Shown here one piece after another: positions 3,308 to 56,023 of a DNA stretch of 64,000 nt. The notes under the pieces are model-generated. The model was not told the origin of the DNA, did no database searches, and saw nothing but the letters and a program-made list of their open reading frames with translations. A program made the position numbers and the translations under genes. The stretch's first letter is position 1; each line of letters opens with the position of its first letter. The stretch is from sequence record MW749006.1; one strand, 5' to 3'.

Positions 3308-5491
3308 GTGTCTACCTCCATCACAGAAGACATCCTCTCCTCCAATAGACTCTATACTGATACCTACCTAAAGAACACTATTAACTTAACAAAGTCTATA
3401 GTGATTAAGAATGACAAAGAAGCTCGTCTCTATAACGATTACATAGGACAAGCTTTCCCAACTCACAAGGTAGATACGACTAACAGAGCTACCTGGAGAT
3501 ATTACAAACATCTCTCTGGACAACATCATCCAGTAGACACTCCTATGGAACTCATCTCCATAGACAACGGTACAGTAATACCACTCACACTAAACACCAT
3601 AGCTCTCAATAAGAACACGCATAAAGAACTTCTACAGTTCAGTTATTACTATCAAGAACTAGTGGATAAGTATCCTGATCAAGAACTACTCATACGTTCT
3701 ATAATCACTACTACTCCAAAGAAAACACCACAACAAATCATAGACTTAGAAGACTACACTATAGTAGGATACAACTCCCAACTAGTAGAGTCTAACGAAG
3801 ACGAGATAATCTATAAACTACAAGACAGAATCAATAACTATAAAGTAACACAACTCTTACATCAATACACTACAACAGACTCACTCTTCTTAGCATCTCA
3901 GTATCACGTACTCTACTCTTATATAGTAACCACATTACTATCCCTACGACTAGAGAACGCTAAGACACCAAGAGCACACAGTTACCACATTCTAAACTAC
4001 TTATCCTCACATCACTACTTAGATACTCAATACAGACATCTAAGTAAAAGACAAGCTCTCTATCTATATCGTAACTTACTCTTCCTGAACAACCACTCAG
4101 GTGCTAACCATGTACAAGAATCACTCATAGAGAATCTCTTCAACGAAAGAAACATCTCCGTAGTGAACTACAGGTATGAGCAAACCAATCAACTAAACTC
4201 AGACGGTTCAATGAAGTACTTCTTTAAACAGAAACTCATGAACAAGAAAGATTTAGTTTATAGTCAGAGTAACTACCAGTTAGAAGAACTATCTAACCGT
4301 GAGATCACTCAAGCTAAGAGTAACAAAGCTACCTATGAGTACGAGCGTGAAGATGTAAACAATAAACTACTCTACACTCTCTCTAACAAACTACTTACTA
4401 AAGACCTAGAAACAATCATCACAGACGTTACTGATACAGTCAAGTATAAACTCATTGCTACTATGATAGACTACTGGGCATACTTAGTTAAGATTAAGTC
4501 CATTAACTTCCTAGTGAGTGTTACAGACCCAATCAACAACGTTACTGTACAACTATTAACTGAAGATCTATTCAAACTCTATACGTTACTCCTCTTCAAG
4601 GCTAACAACTTAGAGTTATCTCACTTCCCTAACTATCAAGTAGATCGAGTATTCAAACCAGTCTTACCTGAGACAGATGAGTTACTCAAAACCTACTACA
4701 AACCACATTACTATCATAAAGATCTGATTACCGAGATCAAGTCAGCTATACCTAGATACACTAACATCACAACGGCTTTCCAGTTTAGTGAGTTTGTTTC
4801 TGAGGTCTATCAACTCAATATCGGTCTATGGTTATTAGAAAGTAATCTCCACGACAAAGACGATAACGGACAAACACTTAACACTATAGGTAATCTCCAC
4901 ACCACTGACACTTTAGTCTTATCTGAAGAAACACCAGAAGACTTTCTACGTCGTATAGGTATGGAAGAGTTATATGTGTATCCTGTAGATGTTATTGAAT
5001 CTATGTCTTATAGTATCTTAGATAGTTTATTCGATAATAAGTTAGACTTCCTTAATAAGTTTAAACACATACAGAAAGCTTTAGTTACTGTCTTTAAGAA
5101 GTTCACAAGTTACACTACTCAGATGTTAGATGACTATAGTTATGAGTCTTCTATTTTAGCAGGCACTAAGGATACCCGTGTTACTATAGATGAGAATATA
5201 CTTAGCTATGGTTTTGTTCAACTCGCTACTCCCTTAACAGTTGATATGAAATACAGGTTAAAGGATAAAGAGACTCTAAGGTTTAAGAGTGAGATACATC
5301 ATTCCAACTCTTACTACAGTGAAGTTTATCTTCCTGTCGTGCCTACTCAAGAGTTTACTTTCCGTAAACGAAGTAATGTGTTTGTTCACATCACACCAAG
5401 ACCTGTATACATTCAACCATCTGAGAGTTGGATAGCAACACCATCCACTAGAGAACATTCAAACTTCTTAGCTTTCAATCCTTTAGATTAA
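3308..5491 (+). CDS. phiKZ-like virion structural protein (gp128-like, probable baseplate/tail)
   Basis: 727 aa; motif WRYYKHLSGQHHPVDTPMELISID recalled from phiKZ-like structural proteins; syntenic with the portal-like gene. Confidence 0.55.
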   Translation: MSTSITEDILSSNRLYTDTYLKNTINLTKSIVIKNDKEARLYNDYIGQAFPTHKVDTTNRATWRYYKHLSGQHHPVDTPMELISIDNGTVIPLTLNTIALNKNTHKELLQFSYYYQELVDKYPDQELLIRSIITTTPKKTPQQIIDLEDYTIVGYNSQLVESNEDEIIYKLQDRINNYKVTQLLHQYTTTDSLFLASQYHVLYSYIVTTLLSLRLENAKTPRAHSYHILNYLSSHHYLDTQYRHLSKRQALYLYRNLLFLNNHSGANHVQESLIENLFNERNISVVNYRYEQTNQLNSDGSMKYFFKQKLMNKKDLVYSQSNYQLEELSNREITQAKSNKATYEYEREDVNNKLLYTLSNKLLTKDLETIITDVTDTVKYKLIATMIDYWAYLVKIKSINFLVSVTDPINNVTVQLLTEDLFKLYTLLLFKANNLELSHFPNYQVDRVFKPVLPETDELLKTYYKPHYYHKDLITEIKSAIPRYTNITTAFQFSEFVSEVYQLNIGLWLLESNLHDKDDNGQTLNTIGNLHTTDTLVLSEETPEDFLRRIGMEELYVYPVDVIESMSYSILDSLFDNKLDFLNKFKHIQKALVTVFKKFTSYTTQMLDDYSYESSILAGTKDTRVTIDENILSYGFVQLATPLTVDMKYRLKDKETLRFKSEIHHSNSYYSEVYLPVVPTQEFTFRKRSNVFVHITPRPVYIQPSESWIATPSTREHSNFLAFNPLD

Positions 5492-9781: not shown

Positions 9782-10000
9782 GTCAACTACCCCTACCTTA
9801 AGGTAAGGGCTTGTGAAGAGTAGCCAACTACTCCAACAACTAAGCTGTTGTACTAGCCGGATTGTAACTTAGCTACAGCGACGTGGTAGTCGCAAGAATA
9901 CGTCTCGAATGCTTCTCTAGTTCGGACCTCTATGGTAGAAAGTGGCGAAGAGACCTTGACTTGTCAACAAGATCCCGTAAGGGAATAACTTAAGGAGGTG
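9782..10000 (+). ncRNA. omega-RNA scaffold (HEARO/OMEGA-like) of IsrB
   Basis: About 220-nt structured non-coding region directly 5' of isrB: GTCAACTACCCC...GGGCTTG start, internal hairpins, GAATGCTTCTCTAGTTCGGACCTCT...GGCGAAGAGA segment resembling omega-RNA core motifs, ending in an AAGGAGG RBS. Confidence 0.8.
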
Positions 10001-10005
10001 TTCAC

Positions 10006-11133
10006 ATGCTGAACTCCCAAGAACCAGCAAAACAAAGATGGGTTCCTGTGGTGTCTTCCACAGGTAAACCCTTGATGCCTTGCTCTCCCAAGAGAGCTAG
10101 GAAACTAATGTCCAAAGGTAAAGCTATACCTAGACACCTTAAAGGACTTTTCTACATTAAGTTAACGGATAGAAGTGATGGTGAGGTTCAATCCGTTGTT
10201 GTGGGTATAGACCCGGGAAGTAGATACGAGGGATACACGGTTAAGTCAGCTACTCGCACTTTCTTAAACGTCAACTCACTAGCTGCTGATGGTAAACGTG
10301 TAAAGAGGATTATGGAAGCTAGAAGTAACTCTAGGAGAGCTAGACGACAGCGTAAGAATCCGTACCGAGCTAATCGAATGAATCGCTCCAGAAGTAAAGG
10401 GTGGGTTCCACCCTCTACTAAAGCTAGGTGGCAACTTAAACTTAACATTCTGAAGTGGTTTGCTAGATTATATCCAGTTACCAATGTGGTTGTGGAGGAT
10501 GTTATCTTCGCTACCGAGAAAGGTGGTAGTGTACGTAACTTAGGATTCTCAGCTATCCAATCTGGTAAGAATTGGTTATATTCTCACATAGTAGCTCTTG
10601 GTTACAACCTAACCACTTTCAAAGGAAGTCAAACAGCAGCTTTCAGAAGACGATTGGGATTGTTCAAGACCACGAACAAAGCTTCTAAGTTGTTTGATTC
10701 GCACTGCGTAGATTCATGGGTACTCGCTAACGAGGTTTTAGGTAACCAACTAAAACCTGACCTAACGCACGTACTAGAACTCAAACCGCTTACTTACATT
10801 AGGAGGCAACTACACCGTACTTGCTTCAAGAAAGGAGGTATTAGAAGTAGGCGTGGTGGTACTATGTCTCTAGGTATTCAGAGAGGTACTCTGGTAAAAC
10901 ACGTTAAACATGGTAAATGTATAGTAGGGGGTAACAATGGCGTAGACAGAGTTAGTTTACATTGCAACATCTCTGTTAGAAATTTAACTCGGAATACTAA
11001 ACTAGTAGACTTGCAACTCATAGCTCACTCACCTTGGTTACTGGTAGATAGACTACGTACTTGTAAGAAAGAGAAGAACGCTAGACGTTACAACAGATAT
11101 TTACTTAGGAACTCGTTACTAGGTAATATGTAA
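10006..11133 (+). CDS. isrB: IsrB RNA-guided nickase (IscB family lacking HNH; RRXRR/PLMP-RuvC)
   Basis: N-terminal PLMP (GKPLMPC), RuvC-I GIDPG, Arg-rich bridge helix RRARRQRK, RuvC-II VVVEDV, RuvC-III SHCVDS; no HNH insertion; 375 aa. Confidence 0.85.
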   Translation: MLNSQEPAKQRWVPVVSSTGKPLMPCSPKRARKLMSKGKAIPRHLKGLFYIKLTDRSDGEVQSVVVGIDPGSRYEGYTVKSATRTFLNVNSLAADGKRVKRIMEARSNSRRARRQRKNPYRANRMNRSRSKGWVPPSTKARWQLKLNILKWFARLYPVTNVVVEDVIFATEKGGSVRNLGFSAIQSGKNWLYSHIVALGYNLTTFKGSQTAAFRRRLGLFKTTNKASKLFDSHCVDSWVLANEVLGNQLKPDLTHVLELKPLTYIRRQLHRTCFKKGGIRSRRGGTMSLGIQRGTLVKHVKHGKCIVGGNNGVDRVSLHCNISVRNLTRNTKLVDLQLIAHSPWLLVDRLRTCKKEKNARRYNRYLLRNSLLGNM

Positions 11134-49857: not shown

Positions 49858-52800
49858 ATGTTAATGTTATATCAACAATTTATCCTGCGCCAAGCTGTAA
49901 AGAATTCAATGTACTTAATTAACCCACCTGTGATGGAAGCAAGTGAGTTAACAGTACCTAGATACACAGTTCTTCACTATCTAGATACAACCTCAGATAG
50001 ACACTTCCCAGATAGAGAACTTTATTACTTTAAAGAGATTGAAAAGAATAAGAAGATACCTATATTACACGTAACTGACTTGTTGTATAAAGAAGACGTT
50101 ACCGTATTAGAGAACAAGTACGTAGGTGCTGAAGTTCGTAAATGGGGACGTTCTAACATTAAGAGTTTTAGAGGTAGTGACCTTGACATCACTCCTAACT
50201 CATCAGTAACAGTGATCGGTGTTTATAACTACAACCTTTTAAAGGATATGTATAAGTATAAAACAACGTTACTTAGTGACTATAATGAACACCAGAACTT
50301 ATATAGAACTTACTGGGACACTATAAAGAAAGCAGTGGATTTAGATCAGGAGTCTAGACACTTAGTAACTATAGAGTTACCCGTACATGTGCCAAGTTAT
50401 AACGTCTTGAAACGCCTCATTCAGTTTACACCAGTGAAGTATAGTCGTGTTGTTAAAGACGATAAACTCAAAACTATCATTGAGTTAGTTAAATGGTTAG
50501 ATCCACAGGAAGAAGGTACTTCCGTGATGTCTAAGATTACTGAAGAGGATTCCTTAAAGATAATCATTGAGTTCAAGTATAAAGGTTATAGTTGTATAGT
50601 TCCTTTATCTACTTTAATGTCTGTCCACGAGAAGTCTACTTTAGAATCAAGTATAAAGATGGGCCCTATTAAAGCTTTGAAGTTGTTCATTGTCTTTCTT
50701 CGACGTATTCAAGATCGAGTAGTTGGAATCACTGATAAACTAGGTGATCCTTTAGAGATTGAAGATAAGTTAGAAGTAGATCAGACTGAAGAGACTACAG
50801 ACGCTCCAGAGGGCGCACAAGACTACGAGGGAGAAGATAGTGGTGAAGATGATGAAACACCAAGCTATCGCGATAGAATCCTTCCTATAGCGTCTCTAGC
50901 TCCTAAGAGAGAGTTAGTTGGTACTGTGATTGATAAGTTATCTGATATAGGATCTGTTCCTGAAATTCCTAAGTATCAGTTTAACCAACCAAAGAAAATA
51001 ACTATACCAGCTATAGCTAATAAAGTACTAAAGAAAAAAGATATAAGTGACGATGATATCTTTGTTAATAGATCAGCAGACATAGACGTAGATCAAATCC
51101 TTAAGGAGATGGATGAAGAAGTAGACGGGATGGATGAGTACTACGAACAAGCTATCATGGGTGGAGGAGAAGACAGTCCAGATACGTTTAACGTGGACTA
51201 TAGTGATAATCTTCGAGAAGACTTGTTGAGAGACATTGACTTAGATAGTAAGTACGAGAACTTCGTAGCTACTGCTAAAGAGTTTAACAGTATGTCTTCT
51301 TCTGAGTTACGTAGTGTTAGTAAGTCTAAAGAGAAACGTGCTACTCTTAAATCCCCTTATGCTAAAGACATTGCTTTAGATACTTACACTGTACCTGATA
51401 AGTTTGGTTCATTGTTAGACAGTGAGGCTATCGGTCTGAATGAGGATATTCCCCATGTTAGTTCTGTCTATAAACAAGACGTACTTAAAGCCTTCGATGA
51501 TAACTATCTGAAGAAACAATACAAGAAAGACATTGTTGCTAACGTAGTTAATCTAGAGAAAGCTGGAGTTATCATCAGTGACTATGAAGTAGAAGAAGTA
51601 AACACTTCTACTGATAACTATGAAGTGCATCGTCTATCTATTCGTCCTTTGAACGGTAAAGAATCAACAGTTCTGTTTCGTTTACCTAAGATAGATAGTG
51701 AAGGTAAGATGCGTTCAGGTAACATCATTACTAAACTACGTAAAGTTAGAACCGATCTACCTATCCGTAAAATCACTCCTACTAAAGTTGCCTTAAGTAG
51801 TAACTATGGTAAGTTCTTTGTGTTTCGCACAGAACGAAGTGCTTACGATCCTTATAAGTACTATGTAGACTTCATTAAGAATTCTTACTTAGACGAAGAT
51901 GGTTTAATTAAGAAAGTAGTTCCACGTAGAAAAAGTCTTAATACTAAGAAGTTCCCTAACGTATACGCTGCCCTAACTAGTGAGTTTAATGAAGTACAAA
52001 CTGAAGGAGCTACTTTACTCCTAGACTATGAGAACAGACATACCTTTGTAGATGAACTAACTCATAAAGACTTGGAGACGAAGAACTTACTATTAGCTGG
52101 GTATTTGAACGGGAAAGGAGATCGTAGTAAAAACATACTAGTAGTGGATATGAACAACAAGTTCTATAACTACACTAACAACATGGAGTTAGTTGGGACA
52201 TTAGAAGATGTTCTAGGTATGGACGTTTCTAAAACACCTAAACCGTTTAGTATGGTTAAAGTGTTGGGTGATAATATCGCATTAGGTCTAGCTCTAAGTT
52301 ACTATGTTGGTTTAAACAATCTACTAGCTATCACTAAGACCGAGTTTAAACTACTAGGTCCTCGTGAAAGATATACTCCAGAGAAAGGTGAGTTAGTTCT
52401 AAGGTTCAGTGATCATAAGTTAGTTATAATAACAGAGAGACAAGAGCAAGAGTTATTGTTCAATGGTTTCTTGTTTTATGAGAACTACACTAAACAACAC
52501 GAACTAGTTCGCTTTAACAATAAAGACATTTATCTAGGTATGGTCGAGTTACGTAACTCAGGAATGATTCATCTTAAAGAAATGGATTTGTTACGTGAGT
52601 TGTTCTTAGATCCTATTACCATTGATGTTCTAAAAGAAATGGAAGAACCACACGAGTATATCCCTTTACTTTTAAAAGCCAACAAGTTGTTAGAGACTTT
52701 AGATCACCCGGATATTAATGATCCACGTATTAGTCGCATTCGTGGTTATGATCGGGTCCCTGGTCTCATGTACAAGGTGTTGACTGAATCAGTTAGGGAA

Positions 52801-54105
52801 CATAGAATCAAAGGTAGAAAGAACTCCAAGATAGAACTAGACCCTTATAAGGTATGGAACTATGTATTGTCCGATAACACTACCAAGATAACTGAAGAGA
52901 CTAACCCTGTAGTTGATCTTAAAGAAAAGGAAGTAATTACTTTCACTGGTAAAGACGGTATGAGTGCTAGCGCTATACCGATGAAGATGAGATCGTATCA
53001 CGAAGAAGATATAGGTTTAATGTCAGAAGCCACTGTAGATAGTAAAGACGTAGCTATTAGCGCTTATCTATCTCCACACGCTAAGATAAAGAACACTCGT
53101 GGTATGGTTTTAGATAACACTGACGAGTATATAAAAGAAAAGGGTACTGTGTTTTCAACCTCTGCTTTATTAGCACCTATGGTTGAGAACGATGACCCCA
53201 AACGAATCAACTTCGTAAATATCCAGAACGGACACACTATCTCAGCGGTTGGGTATGTTCAACCAACTATTCGAACAGGCTATGAATATGTCATGCCATA
53301 TCGAGTAGGTCCTCTGTATGCTTCTATGGCAGAAGAAGACGGTGAGGTTGTTTCTGTTACTGATAAACAACTGGTAGTTAAATACAAGTCAGGTGAAGTC
53401 AAAGCTATTAAAGTAGGTACACAATACGGACGAATGGAAGGTTCAGTTTATCCACACAGCTTAGTGACTGATCTAACTCCAGGTAAGAAGTTTAAGAAAG
53501 ATGTAGCTCTTGCATATAACGAGAATTTCTTCGAGAAAGATTGGTTAGATTCGACTAAGCTCTTAATGAAGTTTGGTAAGAACATCTCCGTTGCTTTAAC
53601 TGCTAATGATGAAACCTACGAAGATAGTTGTTCTGTATCTGATACTTTAAGTGAAGGAATGACTACCTCTATTATTAAAGAGAAGATCTTTATTATTGAG
53701 TCAACTAAAAACATAATCAACTTAGTTCCTATCGGTTCTAAAGTAGATCCTAATACACCTTTGTTTTCTATAGTAGATGAAACTACAGACTACAATAACT
53801 TATCTGAAACCTCAGTTGACTTACTACAGAACTTAGCCACTATGTCTCCTAGAGCCAAAGTCTATGGTGAAGTAGAACGTTATGAGATTAAATATAACGG
53901 TGAGTTAGCTGATATGTCTCCTACTTTTAGGAAGTTAGCTAACAAACTAGATAAGGATTTATTTGAAGAAACTAAAGGCACTGAATACGAAGCTAAGAAT
54001 AATAGAATTACAGCAGAGTATCGTTCAGAAGGAAAGAACTTAAACGTAGACACTTTAGAACTAAAGATCTATGTTACAGTACAACTTGGCATGGGTATTG
54101 GTGAT
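49858..54105 (+). CDS. Virion RNA polymerase beta subunit (phiKZ gp178-like), exon 1
   Basis: RKVRTDLPIRKI, KRIRGYDR-like region, GLMSEATVDSKDVA, DDPKRINF...IQNGH, QPTIRTGYE; ends MGIGD just before an in-frame TAA that starts the intron. Confidence 0.9.
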
Positions 54106-55776
54106 TAACTAAAGTAACTAATTTACATCAACTATTATGTGAAAATATATGGTAGTAGGTGGTTAAGGTGTATAATATACTTCGCGTAAATAAAAGATAT
54201 TCGATTGATCTTCAAGGTAATGTTAAGTTAGACGATGTCAAAATTGTAGATAAAGATTCCACTGAAAAAGTAACAATTGAGATTGAAGGTAAGTTATTTA
54301 AACTATGTCCTATATGGTTGGGTTTAATAGCTCACTATCAAGTAGAGGTTTCTGTTAAAGATCTCTTTAATATTTCTTTTGTAAAGTGTGTGAGTAAACT
54401 CTTACGCTATCGGTGTGAAAATAAAATGGTTTTTAATAAACCAATTATCTACAAACCTGGATTTAGGGTAGTTCCCGATTTGATGAGATACGCTGTATCT
54501 AGAAACGGTGAAGTCATTTCTATAAATACAGACAGGTCTTTAAAGATTCAAACTGGCCCTAATGGTTATCCGGTTGTAAATCTTTACGATCCAGACAAAA
54601 ATCGTTATAGGTCAGTTGGCGTTCATATACTAGTGGCTAGAAGTTGGGTTGTAAATCGTAATCCAACTATTAACCACGTTGTGAATCATAAAGACGGAAA
54701 CAAAACTAACTATCATTACCTTAACTTAGAGTGGACTAACGGAGTTAAGAATAACATACACGCCAGAGATACTGGATTAACGTCAGATAACATTAACTGT
54801 ACACTTTACGACACTGAGACTCACAAATTTGTAGACTTTCCTTCTATCTCCGAAGCCGCTAAAGCTATAGGATATATTAGAAGTTCTATAAAGACAACAA
54901 TAGTGTTGAATGGAGTTAAACAATTAAGGTTAATCTTTGGTAGATATTATCTTATCCGAAAAGACTGTGAGTTTAAAATTGAAGATGTTAAAACCTTTTT
55001 AGAGTTTAAAAGAACTGCCAATAAAGGACCTTACGAAGTATTATGTATTAAAAGTGGGGAAACCATGACGTTAAACTCTGTACCGGAAATTACAAGACAT
55101 ATAGGTATAAATGAGTCGAATATCTACCATGCTTTAGGTAGAGGACCAAGTTATCCTGTAGGAGATTTCCTAGTTAGAGTTAAAACAGATAAACCATGGC
55201 CTAAACCAGTTCCTCGTAAGGTAATAAATCGACCTGTTAGTATAGAAGCTAGGAAAGACGGTAAGTCTTTAGTCTTTAAATCTATACGCGAAGCTACAAC
55301 CCATCTAGAGTGCGACAAGAGTACTATAACTAAAAGACTTAAAAGTCCGGATAGGTTTGGTGCTTATGAAGGATGGACCTTTAAAAAAATAGTTACAATA
55401 TAGTCCTATTACAACGAAACTTGTAATAGAATTCTCTCTAATTGACGGGAAAATCCTTAGAGCTTTATCTACCAAACTACTACAGGAAACTTAGTAGCGG
55501 CTAACAGTAATGTGTTAGGTACGGTAAAAAAGATAAAGATTGGGTGATCCGCAGCGAAGCTTCTAAATATAGTCGGGAGACTAGATACGAAGAACGTTCA
55601 ACGACTACATGACTTACCATCAAGTAGGAGTCAGTGACTCCAAAACGGGAGACACCTTAGCGTGTGTAATGACGTAGGTGAAGATATAGTCTGTTCCTGA
55701 AGGAAAGCTTCAGGCGGTGCCGCTCTAACTGATAGAGACAGGCCGGGTAAGCGTAACGAACTTACTGGACATAAAG
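54106..55776 (+). mobile_element. Group I self-splicing intron with homing endonuclease
   Basis: 5' exon ends in U (GAT|TAA); intron ends in G (AAAG|AAA). Core elements P AATTGACGGGAA (~55440), Q GATCCGCAGC (~55546), R GTTCAACGACTA (~55596), S AAGATATAGTCT (~55680). Splicing restores IGD|KVVFGNQMKS. Confidence 0.88.
54159..55403 (+). CDS. Intron-encoded HNH homing endonuclease (NUMOD4-HNH-NUMOD1, I-HmuI-like)
   Basis: YAVSRNGEV (NUMOD4-like), VHILVARSW...VNHKDGNKTNYHYLNLEWTN...NNIHA (HNH), repeated F.SI.EAA/A...L C-terminal DNA-binding modules. Confidence 0.88.
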   Translation: MVKVYNILRVNKRYSIDLQGNVKLDDVKIVDKDSTEKVTIEIEGKLFKLCPIWLGLIAHYQVEVSVKDLFNISFVKCVSKLLRYRCENKMVFNKPIIYKPGFRVVPDLMRYAVSRNGEVISINTDRSLKIQTGPNGYPVVNLYDPDKNRYRSVGVHILVARSWVVNRNPTINHVVNHKDGNKTNYHYLNLEWTNGVKNNIHARDTGLTSDNINCTLYDTETHKFVDFPSISEAAKAIGYIRSSIKTTIVLNGVKQLRLIFGRYYLIRKDCEFKIEDVKTFLEFKRTANKGPYEVLCIKSGETMTLNSVPEITRHIGINESNIYHALGRGPSYPVGDFLVRVKTDKPWPKPVPRKVINRPVSIEARKDGKSLVFKSIREATTHLECDKSTITKRLKSPDRFGAYEGWTFKKIVTI

Positions 55777-55989
55777 AAAGTAGTTTTTGGTAACCAAATG
55801 AAATCAGTTGTTTCTGATGTATTTAGTTCTACTATTAAAACAGAAAGTAACAAAAGAGTTGAGGCTTTCTTCTCTTATGACGGTATCCTACGTCGTGTTG
55901 CTAACTCACCAATCCTAATGGGAACTACTAATAGATTGCTAAAAGAAGCTAGTAAACAAGTAACAAATATATACTTTAATAAGAAGTAA
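55777..55989 (+). CDS. Virion RNA polymerase beta subunit, exon 2
   Basis: KVVFGNQMKSVVSDV...EAFFSYDGILRRVANSP is in frame after the terminal intron G. Confidence 0.85.
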   Translation, partial: KVVFGNQMKSVVSDVFSSTIKTESNKRVEAFFSYDGILRRVANSPILMGTTNRLLKEASKQVTNIYFNKK

Positions 55990-55993
55990 CGAA

Positions 55994-56023
55994 TAGACCG
56001 ACAGGTTAACCCCTGTCGGTCTA
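55994..56023 (+). terminator. Terminator-like hairpin
   Basis: Perfect 12-bp stem TAGACCGACAGG/CCTGTCGGTCTA. Confidence 0.6.

Follow-up and report, generated by a model that had tools for sequence, protein, structure and literature searches.

A predicted group I intron with an HNH endonuclease gene splits the virion RNA polymerase beta gene of Bacillus phage AgentSmith at the GDK motif

In the genome of Bacillus phage vB_BspM_AgentSmith (MW749006.1; 200,233 bp), an open reading frame (ORF) for the beta subunit of the virion RNA polymerase (RNAP) ends in the middle of the conserved GDK motif, and the coding sequence for the remainder of the protein is found only behind a second ORF that encodes an HNH endonuclease. 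This locus raises the question of whether the two parts are exons of a single gene, whether the segment between them is an intron that can be spliced, and what its endonuclease might do. All coordinates given here refer to the window, i. e. the whole stretch of 64,000 nucleotides that was analysed, in which a position equals the record position minus 62000. A preliminary description of the window had proposed a group I intron at 54106-55776. Our sequence comparisons confirm that a predicted group I intron splits the virion RNAP beta gene between the D and the K of the GDK motif, and judging from these comparisons we assign a probability of roughly 0.86 to the idea that it is a functional self-splicing intron with exactly these boundaries.

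The interrupted gene and the exon joint

The boundaries that had been proposed agree with the reading frames. Exon 1 ends with GGT GAT followed by TAA (54106-54108), the stop codon of the ORF 49858-54108, and behind G55776 the frame resumes with the codons AAA GTA GTT TTT GGT AAC CAA ATG AAA (KVVFGNQMK). Likewise, the P/Q/R/S core that had been recognized 3' of the endonuclease ORF was recovered by the Rfam model for group I introns (RF00028), which matches over its full length (positions 1-253, 81.8 bits, E 2.9e-19; gathering score 50 bits) at 55384-55713, including P4/P4' and P7. In a scan of the whole AgentSmith record, 54106-55776 was the only Rfam group I intron, and a permissive scan of the whole window gave no second one.

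To place the joint, exon 1 and exon 2 were searched and aligned separately with each reference. Of the 1424 positions of PHROG 3148 ('RNA polymerase beta subunit'), 2-1354 are matched by exon 1 (E 5.5e-282) and 1355-1422 by exon 2. The alignment of exon 1 with phiKZ gp178 ends at ...PCGVGD1376, and that of exon 2 begins at K1377 (KGVVANQMKTV). In the intronless phage Eowyn, the tblastn matches of the two exons touch to the base (166998-167909 and 167910-168119), and they are likewise contiguous in the intronless KpGz_1, KpHz_2 (joint 142165/142166) and KpLz-2_45. Since the exons thus abut on the profile, on gp178 and in intronless relatives, the intron is the segment 54106-55776 of 1671 nt, with GAU joined to AAA. 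The closest relatives in IMG/VR, L006 and L007 (64% and 55% identity, respectively, in the final 300 residues that exon 1 encodes), and seven metagenome loci with 54-64% identity, two of which are the same phages as L006 and L007, have the uninterrupted frame (G/A)D^KGV(F/I)xxQMKSV, in which the caret marks the AgentSmith insertion site; an Rfam scan of L006 and L007 gave no match.

The assignment of the host gene to the virion RNAP beta subunit holds as well, as the gene is an orthologue of phiKZ gp178 and AR9 gp188. The gp178 protein matches the AgentSmith protein with an E value of 4e-156 and 34% identity over 880 aa, with an additional weak match of the N-terminal extension, and AR9 gp188, annotated as 'DNA-directed RNA polymerase beta subunit, N-terminus; virion RNAP subunit', also matches. 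While gp178 carries the annotation 'structural head protein', it is a subunit of the virion RNAP that is packaged in virions and transcribes early genes (Birkholz et al., PMC11620839). The orthology and the place of the AgentSmith gene among terminase, structural and tail-fibre genes suggest that its product is packaged in the virion, too.

The site had been called conserved, and this is borne out: all aligned homologues have the same G, D and K, which line up with the GDK..RHGNKG of bacterial beta subunits. A profile of six intronless homologues matched residues 535-712 of the Thermus beta subunit (E 3.2e-09), and a second stretch of the profile, weak but collinear, matched residues 822-880, which contain the GDK. 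In this stretch, the phage sequence GVGDKGVFANQMKSV aligns with VGDKLANRHGNKGVV; the Thermus motif aligned with the phage GDK is VGDKLANRHGNKG, and the intron site corresponds to the bond between D837 and K838. Both bacterial beta motifs, DD and GDK(x7)K, are present and collinear in the AgentSmith protein, and the spacing between the two lysines of the phage motif is that of the bacterial motif. We take these lysines (K1065 and K1073 in E. coli) to be the conserved pair that lies close to the active centre in the double-psi beta-barrel of the beta subunit.

One codon from the splice junction, at 55780-55782, there is a lineage-specific change: AgentSmith and a close relative from landfill metagenomes (see below) have GDK-V, and all other homologues examined have GDK-G (G402 of the alignment is invariant). 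The change could mean that the intron-bearing allele has adapted, for instance by becoming immune to the nuclease that it encodes, or it could mark a co-conversion tract.

Natural alleles and the proposed splicing pathway

Variants of the locus were found in metagenome contigs, which show the presence of a sequence and not its strand, its ends or its expression level. In the landfill metagenome X2, a contig of 2280 nt from a close relative runs through the intron site, with an identity to AgentSmith of 92% in the aligned stretch of exon 1 and of 97.6% in the core and exon 2. It reads through exon 1 and T54106, continues with TGTAAA and then from position 55400 to the end of the gene, so that 54107-55399 are replaced by six bases: the relative has an intron at the identical site that lacks the 1293-nt ORF segment. 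The same ORF-less joint is present in X4, from a second landfill study, which also yielded a contig of 60 nt in which 54105 is joined to 55780 via AAG, the lysine codon of the relative, i. e. the exact exon-exon joint. A length of 60 nt is what is expected for a short bubble arm in a k=31 assembly graph, and the adjoining contigs break exactly at 54105/54106 and 55776/55777. The 60-nt contig more likely represents an allele that lacks the intron than spliced RNA, and in both cases it marks the predicted junction. Further contigs from X2 and X4 match the last 40 nt of the intron (55737-55776) and diverge exactly after 55776 into another 3' exon; therefore, some phage in these samples has a related intron in a different gene. 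Finally, some fragments in the wastewater metagenome X1 match AgentSmith without a difference; among other parts, they cover a portion of the ORF and the 3' junction in its unspliced form. Thus, environmental populations seem to hold the empty site, the ORF-less intron and the HNH-bearing intron at once, i. e. all stages of the homing cycle.

How might the gene be expressed? The primary transcript would be translatable only up to the UAA that opens the intron. In the model that we prefer (model A), the exon end GAU and the UA of the intron would pair with the guide UAGUC (55401-55405), placing U54105 in a wobble pair with G55403. Free guanosine would cleave after U54105, and the freed exon end would then attack 3' of G55776 and thereby join GAU to AAA. 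Splicing along this path would restore ...GIGD-KVVFGNQMK... in a protein of 1486 residues in which both lysines of the GDK(x7)K motif are intact, and the spliced product would be expected to give the tryptic junction peptide IYVTVQLGMGIGDK, the final K of which comes from exon 2.

The anatomy of the RNA (see Table 1) is consistent with this pathway. The 5' splice-site U54105 sits in a U.G wobble with the guide, as in group I introns, within a helix of 5 bp (GAUUA/UAGUC), and the GAUU/AGUC hairpin of P1 recurs in the minimum-energy fold of the ORF-less form. At the 3' end, P9.2 is followed by UGGACAUAAAG, the last base of which is the terminal G55776. The modelled layout of P7.1/P7.2 and P9.1/P9.2 points to the phage IA type as the putative subgroup. 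The core of the landfill relative differs by A55700G, which turns an A-U pair of P9 into G.U, by G55664C and G55666A in the P8 loop, and by C55483U at an unpaired base.

The intron's 5' end can be paired in a second way. In this model B, UAGUUAC at 55390-55396 would serve as the guide and pair with GUGAU^UA; the helix is longer (7 bp, including two wobbles), and U54105 would be opposite a G here too. However, the ORF-less natural variant has lost 55390-55396 and retains 55400-55405, and in the related intron of phage EL the guide directly abuts P2, as it does in model A. For these two reasons, i. e. the retention of 55400-55405 only and the position of the EL guide GUC next to P2, we prefer model A and rejected model B, which has little probability left. 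The endonuclease ORF lies inside the P1 loop in either model. Under model A, we propose that 55390-55396 pair with 54114-54120 as P1a, which would close the ORF-bearing loop.

The annotation of the locus would also fit a different fate of the gene. If the intron were a relic that has lost splicing, the locus would encode two polypeptides, one of 1416 aa and one of 63 aa from ATG 55798, as one more split in a phage RNAP that is split already. Jumbo-phage RNAP subunits are indeed naturally split, such splits have been proposed to arise from the loss of introns (PMC7598289), and GenBank annotates exactly these ORFs separately. Yet the core scores far above the threshold with every core element present, the natural variation retains the P9 pairing (A55700G gives G.U) and otherwise falls into loops, and no ribosome-binding site was seen 5' of 55798 in the sequence inspected. 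Moreover, the conserved KVVFGNQ in front of ATG 55798, including the invariant K of the GDK motif, would be lost. A relic is therefore very improbable.

Several observations nevertheless weigh against a functional splicing intron with these boundaries. P1 comprises only 5 bp, inspection revealed no P10 pairing of the 3' exon with the bases 5' of the guide, and the 7-bp match of P1a is without statistical support, as 19% of shuffles yield one. In the landfill relative, A55623C breaks a pair of the predicted P7.1. The 60-nt contig that bridges the exons is short (23 and 27 flanking bases), and the label 'DNA?' of its run is a guess. None of the runs on record as RNA contains the intron stretch. 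Finally, splicing of the predicted introns of phiKZ gp56, gp72 and gp179 was not seen in full-length cDNA under the conditions tested (10.1101/2023.10.13.562163), so that a good match to the core is no proof of splicing.

The endonuclease and its possible role

The intron ORF does encode an HNH endonuclease, as had been noted in the preliminary description. The ORF 54168-55403 has 411 codons, with the GTG start 5 bases 3' of AGGUGG (54157-54162). In Pfam, the protein matches NUMOD4 (105-143; 23.2 bits, just below the cut-off of 23.4), NUMOD1 (217-245) and I-HmuI_NUMOD-like (366-394), and it is also matched by PHROG 59 ('HNH endonuclease'). Its sole relative with a solved structure is I-HmuI (1U3E; E 3.8e-07), residues 12-96 of which align across VVNH174KDGNKTNYHYLN186LEW. 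When the protein is aligned with phiKZ gp56, gp72 and gp179 and with AR9 gp189, residues H153, H174, N186 and N195 are the same throughout; the residue before the catalytic His is Asn in AgentSmith and in the phiKZ proteins, and Asp in I-HmuI. The nearest relatives in sequenced phages are the HNH genes of phiKZ-like phages, with 24-32% identity, and no close copy of the ORF was found among the sequenced phages. In several Serratia phages, HNH matches lie upstream of the RNAP beta gene's end, at a distance of about 1.3 kb. A hairpin over part of the ribosome-binding site (GGUG of AGGUGG) might keep translation of the nuclease in check, which recalls the translational control of the intron ORFs of T4.

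It is tempting to speculate that the intron is mobile. Its 1.29-kb P1 loop holds an I-HmuI-like HNH/NUMOD gene, the product of which, by analogy to I-HmuI, I-BasI and PhiPA3 gp210, would nick the DNA of co-infecting relatives near GGnGAY^AAAGGnGT in alleles that lack the intron; nicking would then result in the spread of the intron or in harm to the rival phage. The sequences show the match to the core, exon boundaries that are exact to the residue, an intact nuclease motif and natural alleles that lack the ORF or the intron at exactly these boundaries; self-splicing in the cell, the activity and the target of the nuclease, and any competitive benefit are inferred. That the endonuclease currently acts in homing or competition is a tentative suggestion, and it is with equal reserve that we consider the GD^K site as a live homing site in Bacillus jumbo phages and the nuclease as a weapon against intronless co-infecting relatives. 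If so, production of the packaged polymerase of the rivals would be disabled, as with PhiPA3 gp210, and AgentSmith would provide a second, independent and, with Bacillus as the host, genetically tractable case of intron-mediated interference competition.

The same data can be read in a more modest way: the intron might splice but no longer be mobile or useful, with an HNH protein that is inactive or has no target, and persist as a neutral, inherited passenger. All distinct relatives at 54-64% identity are intronless, and in the close relative the ORF was either lost or never present, a distribution that fits a sporadic and possibly decaying element; AgentSmith has only this one Rfam group I intron in its 200-kb genome, and the position of the metal ligand before the catalytic His is occupied by Asn rather than by the Asp of I-HmuI. 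On the other hand, Asn-His is the norm in phiKZ gp56, gp72 and gp179, and H153, H174, N186 and N195 are conserved. The ORF is intact over its 411 codons and has a strong ribosome-binding site, and identical fragments of it are present in an independent wastewater sample. Moreover, empty sites are present in the population, and targets for the nuclease therefore exist. An inert passenger thus seems unlikely to us.

Known phage introns and the annotation of the locus

Introns in the RNAP genes of jumbo phages are not new. RNAP subunit genes, including those of the virion enzyme, are often disrupted by introns, as described in a preprint on Staphylococcus jumbo phages (10.1101/2020.12.14.422802). 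In PhiPA3, the HNH nicking endonuclease gp210 is encoded by a putative group I intron in gp211/209, which follows the equivalent of D1072 of gp178 in the DD motif; phiKZ gp178 is nicked by gp210, an enzyme that favours PhiPA3 when the two phages co-infect (PMC11620839). The preliminary description had set AgentSmith apart from PhiPA3 by its site in a virion rather than a non-virion RNAP gene. This contrast fails because the PhiPA3 intron itself resides in the virion RNAP beta gene, the homologue of gp178 (PMC11620839). Similarly, the point that splicing would be needed for an essential packaged enzyme is right but was known before.

The two elements share the gene and the type of element, i. 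e. a group I intron with an HNH nicking endonuclease behind a conserved Asp close to the active site. They differ in the site: PhiPA3 has its intron at the DD site (gp178 D1072, E. coli D675), whereas the AgentSmith intron is at the GDK site (gp178 D1376), about 300 residues downstream, and the DD site of AgentSmith is uninterrupted (VENDDPKRINF). The hosts are Pseudomonas and Bacillus, respectively.

AR9 is another Bacillus jumbo phage, and in its orthologous gene gp188, too, Rfam recognizes group I introns, of which one contains an HNH gene. However, gp188 is annotated as a join of six exons and has five introns (locus L016, NC_031039.1, 7109-10012, minus strand), and its GDK site is continuous (ELGIGDKITYY), so that none of the five introns is at the AgentSmith site. 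The intron load of the two Bacillus jumbo phages differs greatly, with five in gp188 alone as compared to one in the AgentSmith genome. I-HmuI of the SPO1 DNA polymerase intron and I-BasI belong, like the AgentSmith protein, to the intron-encoded HNH nicking family of Bacillus phages with NUMOD-type modules. I-HmuI differs by its host gene, for a DNA polymerase, and by its size of 174 aa as compared to 411 aa; the AgentSmith protein is extended by about 100 aa at its N-terminus and has additional DNA-binding modules, and its ORF lies in the P1 loop.

Phage EL carries an intron in its virion RNAP beta gene (gp186/gp187) as well, the core of which gives the longest DNA match to AgentSmith (75% over 173 nt), and in which the 5' exon GAU pairs with a GUC guide adjoining P2, as in AgentSmith. 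In contrast, the EL intron is ORF-less, scores below the Rfam gathering score and is located at the DD site of PhiPA3, after ...THDD. We considered a special kinship with the EL intron and rejected it, as introns of Staphylococcus and SPO1-like phages have a similar core identity. In the EL locus (L002, NC_007623.1), this ORF-less intron with a core like that of AgentSmith (3940-4396, between gp186 and gp187) is unannotated, and so is an Rfam-positive intron at 138-510, which lies upstream of gp186 and behind gp185, an HNH gene.

Among HNH proteins, phiKZ gp56, gp72 and gp179 form the closest clade (26-27% identity); they have the same VNHKDGN motif and the same order of ORF and core. Unlike the AgentSmith ORF, gp56 and gp72 are in the non-virion RNAP genes (gp55/56 and gp71-73), and gp179 is upstream of gp178. 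In phiKZ (locus L005, NC_004629.1), an Rfam group I match of 92.2 bits is located at 10397-10718 on the minus strand, with gp179, an HNH gene, on one side and the start of gp178 as annotated on the other; because the N-terminus of gp178 aligns with that of the AgentSmith protein, this intron would be placed upstream of genes or between them (gp180-gp179-gp178) and not inside gp178.

No intron was found at the AgentSmith site in AR9, phiKZ, Eowyn, Goslar, RP12 or the IMG/VR and metagenome relatives, with about 280 further homologue-bearing records not checked individually. The novelty lies in the insertion site, which none of the other phages examined here was seen to share, in the phage lineage and in the natural alleles as a set. 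The finding adds a site within the two-lysine GDK...K motif to the mobile introns of jumbo-phage RNAP genes and leaves the current understanding of such elements unchanged. The ORF-less and intronless alleles of close relatives offer a convenient Gram-positive system for the study of homing and of interference between phages.

At this locus (window 49858-55989; MW749006.1 111864-117989), GenBank annotates three separate genes and no intron feature. AGENTSMITH_111, labelled 'putative HNH endonuclease', is in fact the 1416-codon ORF of exon 1 of the RNAP beta gene; the actual HNH gene, AGENTSMITH_112 (54168-55403), is labelled 'hypothetical protein', as is AGENTSMITH_113, which starts at ATG 55798 and covers only the last 63 codons of exon 2. 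The public record can thus be corrected: the three 'genes' are one intron-split virion RNAP beta gene and one homing endonuclease gene.

Table 1. Features of the RNAP beta locus and predicted elements of the intron RNA (window coordinates; the caret marks the 5' splice site)
Feature	Position	Strand	Remarks
Exon 1, N-terminal part of virion RNAP beta	49858..54105	+	1416 codons, ending ...MGIGD; ORF, PHROG 3148, phiKZ gp178
Group I intron (predicted), 1671 nt	54106..55776	+	opens with in-frame UAA, closes with omega G55776
P1 5' strand GAU^UA	54103..54107	+	U54105.G55403 wobble; pairing check
Proposed P1a 5' strand GUAACUA	54114..54120	+	pairs with 55390-55396, 7 Watson-Crick pairs
Hairpin over part of ribosome-binding site of intron ORF	54126..54161	+	-12.6 kcal/mol, z = -3.07
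Intron ORF, HNH endonuclease	54168..55403	+	411 aa, GTG start; Pfam, PHROG 59, 1U3E
Proposed P1a 3' strand UAGUUAC	55390..55396	+	inside end of ORF; also guide of rejected model B
Internal guide sequence UAGUC (P1 3' strand)	55401..55405	+	directly 5' of P2
P2 hairpin CUAUUACAA / UUGUAAUAG	55406..55429	+	strands 55406-14/55421-29
Catalytic core	55432..55714	+	Rfam alignment, motif positions, folds
P3	55433-38/55647-52	+	
P4	55443-49/55548-53	+	one A bulged
P5 with three-way extension	about 55455-55544	+	
P6/P6a	55554-55597	+	loop GGGA
P7	55603-07/55687-91	+	within GUUCAACGACUA...AGAUAUAGUC
P7.1 and P7.2	55612-55641	+	two predicted hairpins between P7 and P3'
P8	55653-55680	+	
P9	55696-55714	+	
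P9.1	55715-18/55742-45, inner 55723-27/55733-37	+	fold
P9.2	55747-51/55761-65	+	fold
Exon 2	55777..55989	+	70 codons (KVVFGNQMKSV...) and stop; PHROG 3148, phiKZ gp178 1377-1442
Terminator-like hairpin with T run	55994..56023	+	immediately 3' of RNAP beta gene

The RNAP beta gene is located between the gene for the large terminase and genes for virion and tail-fibre proteins. A search of the AgentSmith record with phiKZ gp54 gave no match to chimallin, a result of little weight for so divergent a protein. The intron-encoded endonuclease had been called the second selfish nuclease in the window, and another one is indeed present: at 9782-11133, an IsrB/IscB-type element combines an IsrB-type RRXRR-domain protein (10006-11133; PF14239, E 3.8e-40) with a HEARO-like RNA 5' of its gene (RF02033, 41.6 bits, below the gathering score of 83).

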